Assembly: GCF_009834535.1 (NCBI RefSeq)
Contig: NC_045716.1
Location: 18,972,001 to 19,036,000, forward strand
Length of the DNA: 64,000 nt
Reading direction: 5' to 3'
Source of the DNA: Camelus ferus
Lineage: Eukaryota
Position 1 is the stretch's first letter, and each line of letters starts with the position of its first letter. Below, one piece after another: positions 8,304-51,797 of the stretch. The notes under the pieces are model-generated. The model had not been told where the DNA came from. It worked only from the letters and a program-made list of their open reading frames with translations, and made no database searches. The translations under genes were made by a program, and so were the position numbers.

Positions 8304-8432
8304 TCACTGGCGGAGGACCTCCTCGTGGTCACCAGTGGGATCTTGGTGGGTCCTGCTGCTTCTGTTTAGCCCCTGGGCTGGAACCTCGCTGAGCTGCGGG
8401 CATCTCACCTCAGCGTAGATGACAGAGAAGTC
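8304..8432 (-). CDS. FCRL6: FCRL6 last coding exon (distal tail, VIYAEV motif, stop)
   Basis: CCCACAG acceptor, phase 0; DFSVIYAEVRCPQLSEVPAQGLNRSSRTHQDPTGDHEEVLRQ*; similar to the human FCRL6 C-terminus. Confidence 0.9.
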   Translation of the reverse strand, partial: DFSVIYAEVRCPQLSEVPAQGLNRSSRTHQDPTGDHEEVLRQ

Positions 8433-8508: not shown

Positions 8509-8540
8509 CTCTTCCTGCTGGGATGACTCTGCAGGCTTGG
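8509..8540 (-). CDS. FCRL6: FCRL6 32-nt cytoplasmic exon
   Basis: CCCCACAG acceptor and GTGAGC donor; (A)KPAESSQQEE; converts phase 1 to phase 0 as required. Confidence 0.85.
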
Positions 8541-9309: not shown

Positions 9310-9422
9310 TTATTTACTGATTTAATTTTTTTCTTTTTGTTTTTTAATGGAGGTACTGAGGATTGAACCCAGGAATTCATACGTGCTAAGCACGCACTCT
9401 ACCACTGAGCTATACCCTCCCC
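9310..9422 (-). mobile_element. tRNA-Ala-derived camelid SINE (Vic-1-like)
   Basis: tRNA-Ala(AGC)-like head, A-rich tail, perfect 17-bp TSD TTCCCCTTTACATTAGT (9293-9309 / 9423-9439). Confidence 0.9.
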
Positions 9423-9471
9423 TTCCCCTTTACATTAGTAAAGGTGTTAACTTTGGCCTGAGATCACTCAC

Positions 9472-9543
9472 CTTCGCTCTTCTTTGGGGTTGTACGTACT
9501 GCAGCATAGACAACCCCTGCATCCTCCCCATTCTGGAAATGAG
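9472..9543 (-). CDS. FCRL6: FCRL6 cytoplasmic exon with ITIM VVYAAV
   Basis: TTTCAG acceptor and GTGAGT donor, 72 nt, phase 1-1; (A)HFQNGEDAGVVYAAVRTTPKKSE, like human HHQKGKDEGVVYSVVHRTSKRSE. Confidence 0.92.
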
Positions 9544-9934: not shown

Positions 9935-10149
9935 ACCTCTGTCCTGGCGGCCAGGCTCCTTTCCTGCTTCCTGCTCCCACCACCAGCTCCACACACTCGG
10001 TCCTCACACTCTTCCTGGAAGCCATCTGCTTCCCTCCCCAGATGACTCTAATTCCTGAGACTCGGGGCTCACGAGGCCTTTCTTCTCCTGACTCCCCTTA
10101 AGAGGCCCTTCTCTGCCTTTATGGGCAGATCGCGGTCCTGCTGGACGTC

Positions 10150-10215
10150 CACTGACACACAGTGGTTGCTGCTCTCCACCTGGGGCTGGGGGCAGATTCT
10201 GGGATGGAAGAGGAT
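10150..10215 (-). pseudogene. FCRL6: Decayed FCRL6 membrane-proximal cytoplasmic exon
   Basis: 66 nt, (D)PLPSQNLPPAPGGEQQPLCVS aligns to human GPLPSQIPPTAPGGEQCPLYAN, but flanked by AT rather than AG (10217-10216) and GA rather than GT (10149-10148). Confidence 0.8.
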
Positions 10216-11213
10216 ATGAAGGCACAATGCACTGAGTGCCTCAAAGAGCAGGCTGGACAGTGGGGACAGAGAGGCTGCCGGGGGTCTGAGGCTGGTTTAT
10301 GAATGAGGGTTAATTCACAGGTCTGGACACGGTTAATTTTTAAGGGATGTTTCCTTGGAAAAATATCCTAGCGGATAGGATGGCTCCATGGGAATCACAA
10401 ACTGGGAGGAAGCAGGGTCAGAAAGGATGGATCACACCTTTGCATCCAAAGAGCCCAGACCCACCAGTCAGGCTGCTTTTCAGAAGGAGGAAAATCTACT
10501 ATGTGCCCGAAACAGGGCCAGGGAATTAAAATTCAGTGTCTACTTTAGAGCAAATTTCCTAACCCAGGCACCGGCACAGAGCTGGATATCAAAAAAGCCC
10601 CTATTCCTAATTCTTCAGTGTCTCATATTCTTCACAACCAGCTTGCAAAGGTTGTACTATTATTTCCATTTTACAGGTGAGGTGACTGAGGCTGGGAGAG
10701 GTGACTTCCCCAAGGTCATACAGTAAGTGGTGGGGACAGAATCTTAAACCACTTTGTATGCTTTTCTCCACTCACATGCTGCCTTTGTGACAGCAGGTGT
10801 TTCCAGAACCTTAAAAATTAGTTCCTGGGATAGGAATTGGGTCACATGTGAGCTTTAGAACCCAGCGTCTAAGAAATATTCAATAGCTCATACAGCAAGA
10901 AAGCATCAGAATCACCAGGTAGGATCTCAGAAATAAAAACCAAGAGGGCAACAGTAGGACCTCGTTGTTTATCTATTTTATATATAGTAGTTTGTATCTG
11001 CTAATCTCAAACTCCTAATCTATTCCTCCACTTTCCCCTTTTCCCCTTAGTAGCGATTAGTTTGTTTTCTATGTCTGTGAATCTGTTTCTGTTTACTAAA
11101 TAAGTTCATTTGTGTCATGTTTTAAGATTCCACATATGAGAGATATCATATATTTGTCTTTCTCTTTCTGGCTTAACTTCACTTAGAATGATGATCTCCA
11201 GATCCATCTATGT

Positions 11214-11353
11214 NNNNNNNNNNNNNNNNNNNNNNNNNNNNNNNNNNNNNNNNNNNNNNNNNNNNNNNNNNNNNNNNNNNNNNNNNNNNNNNNNNNNNNN
11301 NNNNNNNNNNNNNNNNNNNNNNNNNNNNNNNNNNNNNNNNNNNNNNNNNNNNN
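11214..11353. other. Assembly gap (140 N)
   Basis: Run of N. Confidence 1.
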
Positions 11354-11491: not shown

Positions 11492-12769
11492 TCACTGTTG
11501 ATGGATATTTAGGTTACATCCACGTCTTGGCTATTGTAAATAGTGTTGCTTTATGAACATTGGGGTGCAAGTATCTTTTCGAATTAGAGTTTCGTCTGGA
11601 TATATTCCCAGGAGTGGGACTGCTGGATCATAGGGTAAGTCTATTTTCAGTTTTTTAAGGAGTTTCCACACTGTTTCCAGTAATGGCTGCACTAAACTGC
11701 ATTCCCACCAACAATGTAGGAGGTTCCCTTTTCTCCACACCCTCTCCAGCATTTGTCATTTGTGGGCTTTTGAATGATGGCCATCCTGACCGGTGTGGGG
11801 TGATACCTCACTGTAGTTTTGACTTGCATTTCTCTGATAACTAGAGATATTGAGCATCTTTTCATGTGCCTATTGTGGCCCCTGATTGTTAAACACTTCC
11901 TAATGCTCATTTGTCAGGGTGGTGTTTCTGAGTCTCATTCATGGAGAGCTCCGTGAATTCAATGGAACTGTGACAACCGGAAGTAAAATGAACACTTTTA
12001 AACAAACTAACCAGAACTTGTACGCTAATGTAAGTGCTACTTTGAGGAGGACCACCTCCCCCCACCATGACCACATCCTGGTTCTAGCGATACCATCATT
12101 GGTCAAAATATTTCAGAAATTGCCTTCAGAGATACAGTGTGATGAATATCTCCAGTGGTGGCACATTTTTGTTCGTTGAGGAATGGCTGTGCTATCTGGA
12201 AGTGGTTAAGGGTCTTCCGAGCTGGGCATGGAGAAAGAAGCTGTTGATCCGTGTTTCTTGTGTAACTGTGGAACTGGGCCTGATGGTGGTTTTCTGAACA
12301 ACATTCTAAAGAAGGCTTTGTGCCCCTGAGATCCCGAGATGATAGGACTGCCACTAAGAGTCTTATTTTCACGAGAGACAGGTTCCTTAATAATATGGAG
12401 CCCACGTGCTCCCAGTTGGCAGTGGCAGTGGCTGGGGGCGTGGAGGTGGGTGGGGAGGCAGAGCTCTGCGTGAAGAAGGATGCTCCTTTATTCCCTGTGA
12501 ACCACATCTCCCTCTTGAGGATCTCCCACCAGCAACTGCTCCTCCACCACCCTCTCCGGGGCTGGGAGGGAGATGGCTGTACTGTGTTGCTTGCCTTTAA
12601 TGCTCTGACCCGGAGGTGAGTGGACAGAAACACCTGTCTTACTGAGGCCAGGCTGGGCCATTGGAAGGGGGCTTTACGACAGGTGCAGGGATGGTAGAAC
12701 TCACAGATCTTCAGTTCGTGGTCCCCTACTCCAGCTGCCTCCCCATGTAGCTCTGGGCCTGCCTCCATC

Positions 12770-14754: not shown

Positions 14755-14883
14755 CGTTTTTCCTCCAGGGTCTGAAATACCCCAGAAGTGCAGCGGCAAT
14801 GACTGTCCCACCAAGCAGGCTTGCAGGCAGCCAAGGAAGCAGCCAGTTCCTGGTGCTGGTGGGGGCAGACAAGACCCGAGGAC
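14755..14883 (-). CDS. FCRL6: FCRL6 transmembrane exon
   Basis: CCCCAG acceptor and GTCAGT donor, 129 nt; NWLLPWLPASLLGGTVIAAALLGYFRPWRK, like human NWLVPWLPASLLGLMVIAAALLVYVRSWRK. Confidence 0.95.
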
Positions 14884-15283: not shown

Positions 15284-15565
15284 CATCCACGGAGAGGGTC
15301 TCAGGCTTGCTTGTCTCTTCGGAGACTCTGTTCTCGGCTTTGCAGGTGTAGTTCCCAGCATCCTGCTCTGACTTCACCAGGAAGAGGAAGGAGGCGGCTC
15401 CTCCACGGAGGGCCATGGGATTCCCCAGCATCTCCCCATTGAGGTAGAATGAGTACAGGATGGGAGGGGAGCCCCTCTGGGCCTCACAGAGGAGCTCCAC
15501 CCCGTACCCCACAGTGAGGCCAGTGGGCCTGGGTCTCAGGGTGAGCAGAGGACTGGACACAGGAG
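15284..15565 (-). CDS. FCRL6: FCRL6 Ig domain 3 exon
   Basis: 282 nt, phase 1-1; LLCEAQRGSPPILYSFYL ... SEQDAGNYTCKAEN; both Ig cysteines present. Confidence 0.96.
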
Positions 15566-15698: not shown

Positions 15699-15983
15699 CC
15701 CACACCCTGATCTCCAGCCAGGGGCTCTGTTTCTGGACCCTGCCACCCTCAGGGGCCGCCTCGCACCAGTAACGCCCGGAGTCCCCTTCCTGGGCTGCTG
15801 GGATGCTGAGTTCTGGGTGGAGGCCCCTGTCCTGCAGAGTGTGGTCCTCCTTGTGGAAGGAGAGGAGGAGCCCCGAGGCCAACCTCTTGGGGTGTAGCTT
15901 CGTCTGGCATCTCAGGGTCACGGGGCTCCCCTCACAAGGCTCATGAGAGGGGATGGCGCTCAGCACAGGAGGTGGAAACAGTT
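15699..15983 (-). CDS. FCRL6: FCRL6 Ig domain 2 exon
   Basis: 285 nt, phase 1-1; ELFPPPVLSAIPS ... VTLRCQTKLHP ... GDSGRYWCEAAPEGG. Confidence 0.96.
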
Positions 15984-16510: not shown

Positions 16511-16777
16511 CTTGGACTTGGACCATGACAGTCCCTGAGGTCCGATTGTTCACATGTCGGCCGGAGGTCACCTGCCCAGCACAGCTGTACCGGCCACTGC
16601 TCTTCACTGTTGCCGTCCCCATGGACAGAGGCTGGTTGTCTTTAGAGAAATGGAAGAGTTTTCCATCCCTGAAGAAATGCACCTGGGACAGGGCTGCGTT
16701 CCTCCCTCCCCAGCATTGCAGAGTCAGGACATCTCCTTCAAACACGGGGTTTGGTGAGACTTGGAGTTTCAGCCAGG
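16511..16777 (-). CDS. FCRL6: FCRL6 Ig domain 1 exon
   Basis: 267 nt, phase 1-1; WLKLQVSPNPVFEGDVLTLQC ... GRYSCAGQV; AG and GTGAGT boundaries. Confidence 0.96.
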
Positions 16778-17431: not shown

Positions 17432-17565
17432 TTTTATTTTTTTTGGCCTGGGGTGGGGGAAGGTAATTAGGTTTCTTTCTTTCTCTCCTTCTCTCTCAGA
17501 TACCGGGGGTTGAACCCAGGACCTCCTGCATGCTAAGCATGTGCTCCAGCACTATACCCTCCCCA
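17432..17565 (-). mobile_element. tRNA-Ala-derived camelid SINE
   Basis: 16-bp TSD CTCTGTCCTCATTTCT (17416-17431 / 17566-17581). Confidence 0.88.
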
Positions 17566-18136
17566 CTCTGTCCTCATTTCTAGAATGCAGTTTATGTCCT
17601 GACGTGGACAAGAGAAGAGCTCCCGGGGACCCAGCATCATCCGCAGGGCTAGCCCAGGCTGGAGCTTTCCCATACTTGACGGAAGCTCCAGGGAGGTCAG
17701 GGGGACGGGCAGGGGCTGGAGGGCAAAGGCAGCCAAGGGAGAAGCAAGGCTAACCCACAGACAAGCATGCCTGCTTCTCTGAGCTTTAATGAGACAGAAG
17801 GGTGTCCAGGGCCTTGATGAGTAGAGGTGACAGGGGCTCCAAAGCCACACTGAGGGGAGGAGGCAGAGGCCAGGGCTACTCATAAGGGAACCGGGTGGAG
17901 GCCCAGAGCCATTCTGCTGGCACTTCAGTCACCCTGTGATCATCGGCAGCCCGAGACAGCGCAGTCCTGGGTCTCTCCTCCTCCTGGGCGCGAGGGAAGA
18001 CTCCTGAGGACGAGGCCTAGTCTGGTGCTGCTCTGAAGGTGCTTCTGGGGGACCCAGTGGCCCCGTCTTGTCCCTGTCTACTAATCGTTGGCCCTGAGAC
18101 ACACTTGGATATGAAAGGGACACAGACAAGACTCAC

Positions 18137-18157
18137 CTGTTTCCCCAACGCAGGGAA
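18137..18157 (-). CDS. FCRL6: FCRL6 21-nt signal-peptide mini-exon (S2)
   Basis: TTGCAG|TTCCCTGCGTTGGGGAAACAG|GTGAGT encodes VPCVGET; the 21-nt S2 exon is a hallmark of FcR/FCRL genes. Confidence 0.92.
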
Positions 18158-42495: not shown

Positions 42496-42861
42496 CCATT
42501 TGCTCAGAGCCTTGTCCTGTAGACTGCCCAGCTGCCCAATAGCCCCTGAGTTCAACCCCCATCTCTCCCAAGTCTGTCCACCCTTTCTCCTTCTTGACTC
42601 ATAAAATTAGCTGGTTCTTCCTTCCCTCTCCTGGAGCCCAAGTCACACTGCTGGGCCCCTTTTTCACTCCTTCCCCTTACCGCCCCGCTCCGCTCCCCTT
42701 CGTTTTAAGTCCTGGTTGCACTCTTCTGGGCCCATGGTCTTCCTCCAATCTCTCTCCGAATCCAGCTAAGTCATTCCCGGCCCTGAACTCTCCGGCTCCG
42801 CCCGTGTCCCCGCTGACCCCTTCCAGGTCCCTCCCTCCAGGCACATATCCCGCCTGCTGAC

Positions 42862-43128
42862 CTCTCCCCGGGCGTTGGCCTCGTCCACTATCTGCACGAA
42901 GCGGTCGATCTGGTCGGGGGCCGGCGGGCAGAAGTCTGGGATGCGCAGTCGGTGCAGGGTGAGACCGGGGCAGCTGTCGCTATGCGGGGGCCCCCGCTCC
43001 GTCAGTGACACCAGGTGCCGGACACCATGGTCCAGCAGGAACTGGTAGTGGGCGGGGAGCCGGGGCAGCGCCAGCCCCGCGAGCCGGCCGGGGAGCACCC
43101 ACGAGAAGTTGGGGGGCTGCACGCCCAT
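42862..43128 (-). CDS. DUSP23: DUSP23 coding exon 1; total protein 150 aa, atypical dual-specificity phosphatase (VHZ)
   Basis: MGVQPPNFSWVLPGRLAGLALPRLPAHYQFLLDHGVRHLVSLTERGPPHSDSCPGLTLHRLRIPDFCPPAPDQIDRFVQIVDEANARGE, GTCAGC donor, phase 0. Confidence 0.98.
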
Positions 43129-43130
43129 GA

Positions 43131-43370
43131 CTGGGGAAGGGCACAGGACAACGGGTACCGGGGGCGAGGCCGGCCCCTCCCGCTTCGCCCACCGCTTCCG
43201 GGGCCGGGTAACCCTCCACCTACCTAGCACTAGCACAGGGGCCTCCTGGAACCACGTGGTCTCGGGGGGGACAGCCCGGTGACGTCCTGCTCCGCCGCAG
43301 GGGATTGGCCGACCCGCCTAGGGGCGGGGCTGGAACACCGAACTCCGGGCTCTGAGTGACTGAGAGGAGC
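43131..43370 (-). other. DUSP23: DUSP23 non-coding first exon (to 43224) and 93-nt 5'UTR intron (43131-43223)
   Basis: CTAG|GTAGGT donor and CTTCCCCAG acceptor 2 nt before the ATG; TSS approximate. Confidence 0.65.
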
Positions 43371-51601: not shown

Positions 51602-51797
51602 NNNNNNNNNNNNNNNNNNNNNNNNNNNNNNNNNNNNNNNNNNNNNNNNNNNNNNNNNNNNNNNNNNNNNNNNNNNNNNNNNNNNNNNNNNNNNNNNNNN
51701 NNNNNNNNNNNNNNNNNNNNNNNNNNNNNNNNNNNNNNNNNNNNNNNNNNNNNNNNNNNNNNNNNNNNNNNNNNNNNNNNNNNNNNNNNNNNNNNNN
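51602..51797. other. Assembly gap (196 N)
   Basis: Run of N. Confidence 1.

Follow-up and report, generated by a model that had tools for sequence, protein, structure and literature searches.

FCRL6 is an inhibitory receptor and a candidate checkpoint in tumour immunology. In human it is a receptor of NK and cytotoxic T cells for MHC class II/HLA-DR; within its cytoplasmic tail, Y371 forms a consensus ITIM that recruits SHP-1/SHP-2, Y356 recruits SHIP1 and GRB2 without being a consensus ITIM, and Y356 and Y371 together could form a non-canonical ITAM (PMC7591390). The receptors of mouse and hamster have a short cytoplasmic tail that contains neither a consensus ITIM nor an ITAM (PMC7591390). 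FCRL6 lies outside the FCRL1-5 cluster and is flanked by DUSP23 and SLAMF8, and a second signal-peptide exon of 21 bp is a hallmark of FCR and FCRL genes in general (PMC10003336). Here we analyse the FCRL6 locus within a stretch of 64,000 nucleotides of the Camelus ferus genome (contig NC_045716.1), referred to as the window.

FCRL6 gene structure in Camelus ferus

The gene was located by tblastn, for which FCRL6 proteins of pig, pangolin and others served as queries, and then assembled as an explicit exon model. This yielded nine exons on the minus strand, all flanked by canonical AG/GT sites, and an exon remnant lying between the transmembrane (TM) exon and the cytoplasmic exon C2:

22683-22713, minus strand: S1, ATG and first half of the signal peptide, MLLWTAVLLS (tblastn; exon model translating exactly to P0280)
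18137-18157, minus strand: S2, second signal-peptide exon of 21 bp, preceded by AG and followed by GTGAGT (exon model)
16511-16777, minus strand: exon of Ig domain D1 (tblastn, exon model)
15699-15983, minus strand: exon of Ig domain D2 (tblastn, exon model)
15284-15565, minus strand: exon of Ig domain D3 (tblastn, exon model, Pfam Ig_2 and Ig_3)
14755-14883, minus strand: TM exon, ending in ...RPWRKN plus G (phase 1), donor GTCAGT (sequence, exon model)
10150-10215, minus strand: remnant of a 66-nt cytoplasmic cassette exon, the human Y356 exon (sequence, tblastn, locus alignments)
9472-9543, minus strand: C2, cytoplasmic exon with the consensus ITIM VVYAAV (equivalent of human Y371), preceded by TTTCAG (sequence, exon model)
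8509-8540, minus strand: C3, cytoplasmic exon of 32 nt (exon model)
8304-8432, minus strand: C4, final coding exon, containing VIYAEV as a second ITIM-like motif as well as the stop codon (exon model)

Without the remnant, the nine exons amount to 1248 nt and translate exactly to P0280, a protein of 415 residues (RefSeq XP_031291859.1 and XP_032319842-4) that its sources name Camelus FCRL6; the best full-length matches in a protein search were likewise all named FCRL6. In the annotated mRNA, C2 (start 9543) is joined directly to the TM exon (end 14755). The ectodomain comprises three Ig-like domains, D1-D3, each encoded by a single exon and followed by an uncharged TM segment. The ITIM tyrosines of the 415-residue product are Y351 in VVYAAV (C2) and Y379 in VIYAEV (last exon), and both motifs fit the ITIM pattern quoted in PMC10003336. 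Taken with 20-nt flanks, the exons are 100% identical to those of a second C. ferus locus (L006), show single-base differences from dromedary and are ~95-99% identical to those of alpaca; these values place the window in Camelus and speak against an alpaca source.

This architecture closely parallels that of human FCRL6 (Q6DN72), which has the same split signal peptide with a 21-bp exon, the domains D1-D3, a TM segment and small phase-1 tail exons. In both species the gene appears to lie downstream of a DUSP-type phosphatase gene and the consensus ITIM exon is conserved; the camel protein is ~60-68% identical to primate FCRL6. Unlike its human counterpart, the camelid product is devoid of a 22-residue exon containing a PxxP-rich stretch and Y356, and its last exon, like that of most non-human mammals inspected, has a tyrosine within an ITIM-type motif (VIYAEV).

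The surroundings of the gene may be those expected for FCRL6. An open reading frame upstream of it (42769-43317, minus strand) encodes a dual-specificity phosphatase domain (Pfam PTP-SAK, E 7e-11) and is probably exon 1 of DUSP23, the expected upstream neighbour. On the downstream side, the C. ferus model P0208 runs on from FCRL6 into another Ig-type protein, which is probably SLAMF8; the position of SLAMF8 falls outside the window.

A cassette exon lacking both splice sites

On the minus strand we found the letters that had been reported in the preliminary description: CAT at 10218-10216, a segment of 66 nt at 10215-10150, and GA at 10149-10148. Read in phase 1, the segment translates as (D)PLPSQNLPPAPGGEQQPLCVS, and it carries TGT (Cys) at 10159-10157, where the conserved codon elsewhere is TAT (Tyr). 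Residues 337-357 of pig FCRL6 match positions 10213-10151 (tblastn), so the remnant is homologous to a real exon. We compared the FCRL6 loci of dromedary (L001, L005), wild Bactrian camel (L006), alpaca (L004), swamp buffalo (L002), gray whale (L003) and white rhinoceros (L007). All seven contain, at the same intron position, a match to the 201 bp surrounding the remnant; at this syntenic position the identity is 81% to rhinoceros, 80% to gray whale and 75% to buffalo (E 4e-49 to 4e-31).

In the three outgroups (buffalo, gray whale and white rhinoceros) the exon is bounded by an acceptor, TCTCCTAG followed by GGCCCCTTCC (the exon starts GGCCCC), and by a donor, G followed by GTAAGGAC, and it reads CTGTATG at the tyrosine. 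Alignment against these sequences revealed a deletion of 9 bp at the acceptor, which took away the AG and the first exon bases (junction ~10214/10213), and a deletion of 5 bp at the donor, which amounts to loss of the GTAAG core (junction ~10151-10149). The preliminary description was therefore correct in regarding the exon as dead, with both splice sites gone and the tyrosine codon now one for cysteine, but it had read CAT as a mutated CAG and GA as a mutated GT. The alignment replaces these presumed point mutations by the 9-bp and 5-bp deletions, and the CAT at 10218-10216 corresponds to outgroup bases further upstream. A homologous exon at the syntenic position, the destruction of its splice sites and its use in the outgroups together define the segment as a dead exon.

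Both deletions and the change of TAT to TGT are common to the window, the two dromedary assemblies, the wild Bactrian camel and alpaca, and are identical in all of them. The remnant bases as such are identical in the two dromedary assemblies and the wild Bactrian camel assembly, and the alpaca assembly has the same lesions. Because Camelus and Vicugna share identical lesions, these were fixed before the camel and llama tribes split. At sites where the outgroups agree, camelid-stem substitutions number 3 in 52 within the remnant, compared with 35 in 416 and 18 in 299 in the flanking intron; on these small numbers the remnant looks about as neutral in sequence as the intron that surrounds it.

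Proposed history of the exon

The reading that we favour, with a probability of roughly 0.85, is that the 66-nt cassette exon died in the camelid ancestor via two micro-deletions and that a shorter, 415-residue FCRL6 is produced by skipping. In the common ancestor of living camelids, one cytoplasmic cassette exon of the phase-1/phase-1 type would have been lost from FCRL6, namely the one whose human counterpart encodes a proline-rich membrane-proximal stretch and Y356. The 9-bp deletion removed the AG of the 3' splice site together with the first exon bases, and the 5-bp deletion the GTAAG core of the 5' splice site; the tyrosine codon became a cysteine codon. Since both splice sites are gone, the spliceosome would join the TM exon (14755) to 9543. 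The neighbouring exons are both of phase 1, so that skipping keeps the frame, and the 415-residue product that had been predicted on this ground is exactly the RefSeq Camelus FCRL6. The resulting receptor would consist of three Ig domains, a TM segment and a tail that is 22 residues shorter; this tail would keep two ITIM-type tyrosines (VVYAAV and VIYAEV) and be without the site that in human docks SHIP1 and GRB2 and that, with Y371, could form the non-canonical ITAM.

The pairing of the two deletions deserves comment. In a five-species alignment, ~1.07 kb of aligned intron contains only about six camelid-specific deletions, two of which fall exactly on the splice sites. By a rough estimate, the chance of a neutral second splice-site hit, given the first, is ~0.05-0.1. 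The pairing may be a coincidence that followed the death of the exon, or selection may have silenced leftover aberrant splicing. We consider it unlikely that the exon was removed by selection and not by drift, the second lesion being favoured after the first had caused harmful cryptic or frame-shifting splicing. If selection was nevertheless at work, camelid FCRL6, at first a mixed SHIP1/GRB2-plus-ITIM receptor, would have become a receptor of the ITIM type only, and the reading of MHC class II by camelid NK/CD8 cells would be altered.

Splicing across the remnant

Camelus bactrianus isoforms X1, X3, X4 and X5, the 415-residue Camelus protein and alpaca XP_072803012.1 pass directly from RPWRKN to AHF(Q/E)NGED or show a longer skip, and the remnant occurs in none of the Camelus and alpaca RefSeq isoforms that were retrieved. 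Of the 31-mers sampled from the Ig/TM exon block, 20-62% occur in each of the RNA runs X1-X14, and none of these runs is listed as containing any of the 14 words sampled from 10100-10260. The k-mer test is coarse: it argues against inclusion of forms of 66 or 75 nt and has little power for a form of 42 nt, inside which ~1.3 sampled words are expected. Words of 10100-10260 do occur in RNA run X26 (0.29, 4/14) and in the probable RNA run X25 (0.86; the kind of run is guessed), and these could stem from intronic pre-mRNA or from inclusion. A protein search with the TM segment and tail of P0167 for RNA-derived partial open reading frames of camelids yielded a right-whale model, a genomic read-through fragment and nothing else. 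From the annotation (Gnomon-type models) and the k-mer evidence we infer that the mRNA skips the remnant, joining 14755 to 9543.

It had also been claimed that the nearest alternative AGs give a frameshift. This holds in combination with the dead donor, but not with a GT at 10156-10155: together with an acceptor AG at 10200-10199 or at 10233-10232, this GT delimits exons of 42 or 75 nt, both of which are open and keep the downstream frame. Inclusion would give products of 429 and 440 residues, respectively, with an unrelated inner peptide. The shorter candidate has the following features:

10157-10198, minus strand: candidate cryptic exon of 42 nt in another frame (ESAPSPRWRAATTV), with a long pyrimidine tract ahead of its acceptor AG (10200-10199) and with GTCAGT (10156-10151) as its donor (translation)

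On this basis the exon might have been redefined and not fully lost, the 42-nt or 75-nt version being used constitutively or in some transcripts. Besides the restored normal frame, the good-looking cryptic acceptor behind its pyrimidine tract speaks for such use, as do the donor hexamer GTCAGT, which is the one really used by the TM exon, and the 4 of 14 words in run X26. However, the splice sites, compared qualitatively, include a weak donor with T at -1 (no G) and C at +3, and X26 does not belong to the runs in which FCRL6 exons are well represented, which makes its words more likely intronic. Moreover, runs X1-X14, which do represent the FCRL6 exons well, contain no sampled word of the region; this counts against the 75-nt form and, to a small degree only, against the 42-nt form. 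No sign of use of the 42-nt exon was seen, and cryptic inclusion is absent from all Camelus and alpaca RefSeq isoforms inspected. We therefore regard redefinition of the exon as quite improbable and retain its loss by skipping as the preferred reading.

Integrity of the gene and of the lesion

Judged from the open reading frame, which is intact in camel and alpaca, camelid FCRL6 seems to be alive. The orthologous alpaca exons form an intact frame of 415 codons that differs from camel at 24 amino acids and retains both ITIM motifs; the dN/dS is ~0.5, a value that is based on 40 differences and is alone no proof of purifying selection. This ratio is high, the older camel and alpaca models are messy (P0214, P0221, P0208) and alpaca has a truncated second copy (P0277), all of which might be taken to mean that FCRL6 as a whole is decaying or non-functional in camelids and that the dead exon is merely the first visible sign. 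We hold this to be very improbable: the camel and alpaca lineages, which separated long ago, both retain the 415-codon frame, every canonical splice site and the two ITIM motifs, many RNA runs contain FCRL6 exons, and a dN/dS of 0.5 is usual for lymphocyte receptors.

The view that the lesions reflect mistakes in sequencing or assembly, or a polymorphism carried by a single individual, has nothing specific in its favour and is refuted, in agreement with the preliminary description as far as error is concerned, by the same sequence in four further assemblies (two of dromedary, one of C. ferus and one of alpaca) and by six non-RNA, DNA-type runs (two species labels and two unlabelled runs), which contain 14 of the 14 sampled 31-mers of 10100-10260.

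The second alpaca gene annotated as FCRL6 (P0277, XP_072803011.1) comprises D1-D3 only, with 310 residues and neither signal peptide, TM segment nor tail, and in an old C. ferus model there is an additional domain resembling D3, with ~87% identity to the real D3 (the proteins concerned are P0026 and P0208). These sequences suggest a partial duplication of FCRL6 in camelids; a search for a second copy within the 64-kb window found none.

Conservation of the exon and its tyrosine in other mammals

For a survey of the exon, the retrieved FCRL6 proteins were compared in the region behind the TM motif. The segment GPLP...PLY.N is kept in pig, sheep, bovids, deer, hippo, baleen and toothed whales, horse and rhinoceros, and also in bears, seals, cats, hyena, pangolin, rabbit, marmot, chinchilla, porcupine, elephant shrew and primates. 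Because the exon is present in the other artiodactyls and Laurasiatheria surveyed, its loss is specific to camelids within Artiodactyla and does not represent an old Laurasiatherian state. This bears out the earlier proposal of a lineage-specific loss, as camelids share the lesions and the other Laurasiatheria surveyed keep the exon.

The tyrosine itself is a different matter. Within retained exons, the equivalent of Y356 is replaced by N in pig, by C in horse (as in the camel remnant), by D in chinchilla and porcupine, and by F in Rhynchocyon; it is lost independently in pig, horse, the caviomorph rodents and the elephant shrew Rhynchocyon. The tyrosine is thus not a defining feature of FCRL6 orthologues, and its replacement in camelids, which had been counted as a special lesion of the exon, has parallels in exons that are otherwise retained.

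Muroid FCRL6 resembles the camelid gene in the lineage-specific loss of tail exons. In hamster (P0269), the TM segment leads straight into a C3-like segment, which matches the short tail published for mouse (PMC7591390). The extent of the loss differs: muroids have lost the Y356 exon, the ITIM exon and one Ig domain, whereas camelids have lost the Y356 exon only and retain the inhibitory motifs. Predicted models in which the exon is skipped also exist for armadillo (P0179), meerkat (P0204), pilot whale (P0209) and gibbon (P0165), with the frame kept as in camelids; in contrast to the camelid case, sister taxa or other copies still include the exon.

A further skip was observed in C. bactrianus isoform X3 (P0276), in which C2 (the ITIM exon, 9543-9472) is also omitted, so that RPWRKN is joined to AKPAESS. 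The tail exons of FCRL6 behave as frame-neutral cassettes, similar skips being found in the gibbon and pilot-whale models.

Probable consequences for the FCRL6 tail

In the human isoform, the tyrosine of PLYAN is residue 356 (canonical numbering), and the ITIM tyrosine follows 15 residues later, in the next exon. Since the human Y356 exon is the counterpart of the dead exon and Y371 is encoded by the exon after it, the lost exon was not ITIM-bearing. The label given to it in the preliminary description must therefore be corrected: in human the exon carries the tyrosine that recruits SHIP1/GRB2, and the ITIM is intact in the next camel exon as VVYAAV. From the human biochemistry we infer that the camelid tail would have lost the SHIP1/GRB2 or ITAM-like arm and retained the phosphatase arm.

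The FCRL6 tail is built from small cassette exons, and the comparative data show which parts of it are dispensable. They suggest that evolution can dispense with the SHIP1/GRB2 or ITAM-like arm and that the core function lies in the SHP-1/2 arm, because camelids dropped the Y356 exon, pig, horse, caviomorphs and elephant shrew dropped the tyrosine alone, and the ITIM exon was kept in all of them. Tail remodelling of FCRL genes is well known, and the old, camelid-wide death of this exon is one more case of FCRL tail plasticity, a modest and tidy example that comes as no surprise.

RefSeq Camelus FCRL6 (415 residues) is identical to the spliced product of the window, so the annotation pipeline had already omitted the exon, as it has in alpaca (XP_072803012.1). 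The annotation is silent on the missing ancestral exon and on the cause of its absence; our comparison adds the two micro-deletions and their age. The literature library that was searched contained no paper on FCRL6 of camelids, nor anything new about splice variants of the gene. For camelid immunology, the present analysis fixes the correct gene model of 415 residues and explains the erratic older models.

Other sequence features

The intron between the TM exon and the dead exon contains, at 12068-12375 on the minus strand, a segment homologous to an alternative 3' terminal exon of pangolin FCRL6 isoform X2 (P0060, tail ACHSESHLQAQFHSH...); the camel counterpart is interrupted by stops (tblastn). 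In the intron between C2 and C3 (9040-9290, minus strand) we observed an imperfect, coding-like repeat that is rich in His, Pro and Asp, and rich in Thr and Ile in another frame. In the alpaca RefSeq model P0278 (521 residues), the homologous repeat appears as the protein sequence ITTTIITVTT..., probably through an artefact of annotation. Copies of a tRNA-derived SINE (GGAGGGTATAGCTCAGTGGTAGAG...) lie on the minus strand at ~9370-9440, just downstream of the C2 donor, and at ~17500-17570, in the intron before D1. Runs of N occupy 11214-11353 (140 bases) and 51602-51797 (196 bases) of the window.
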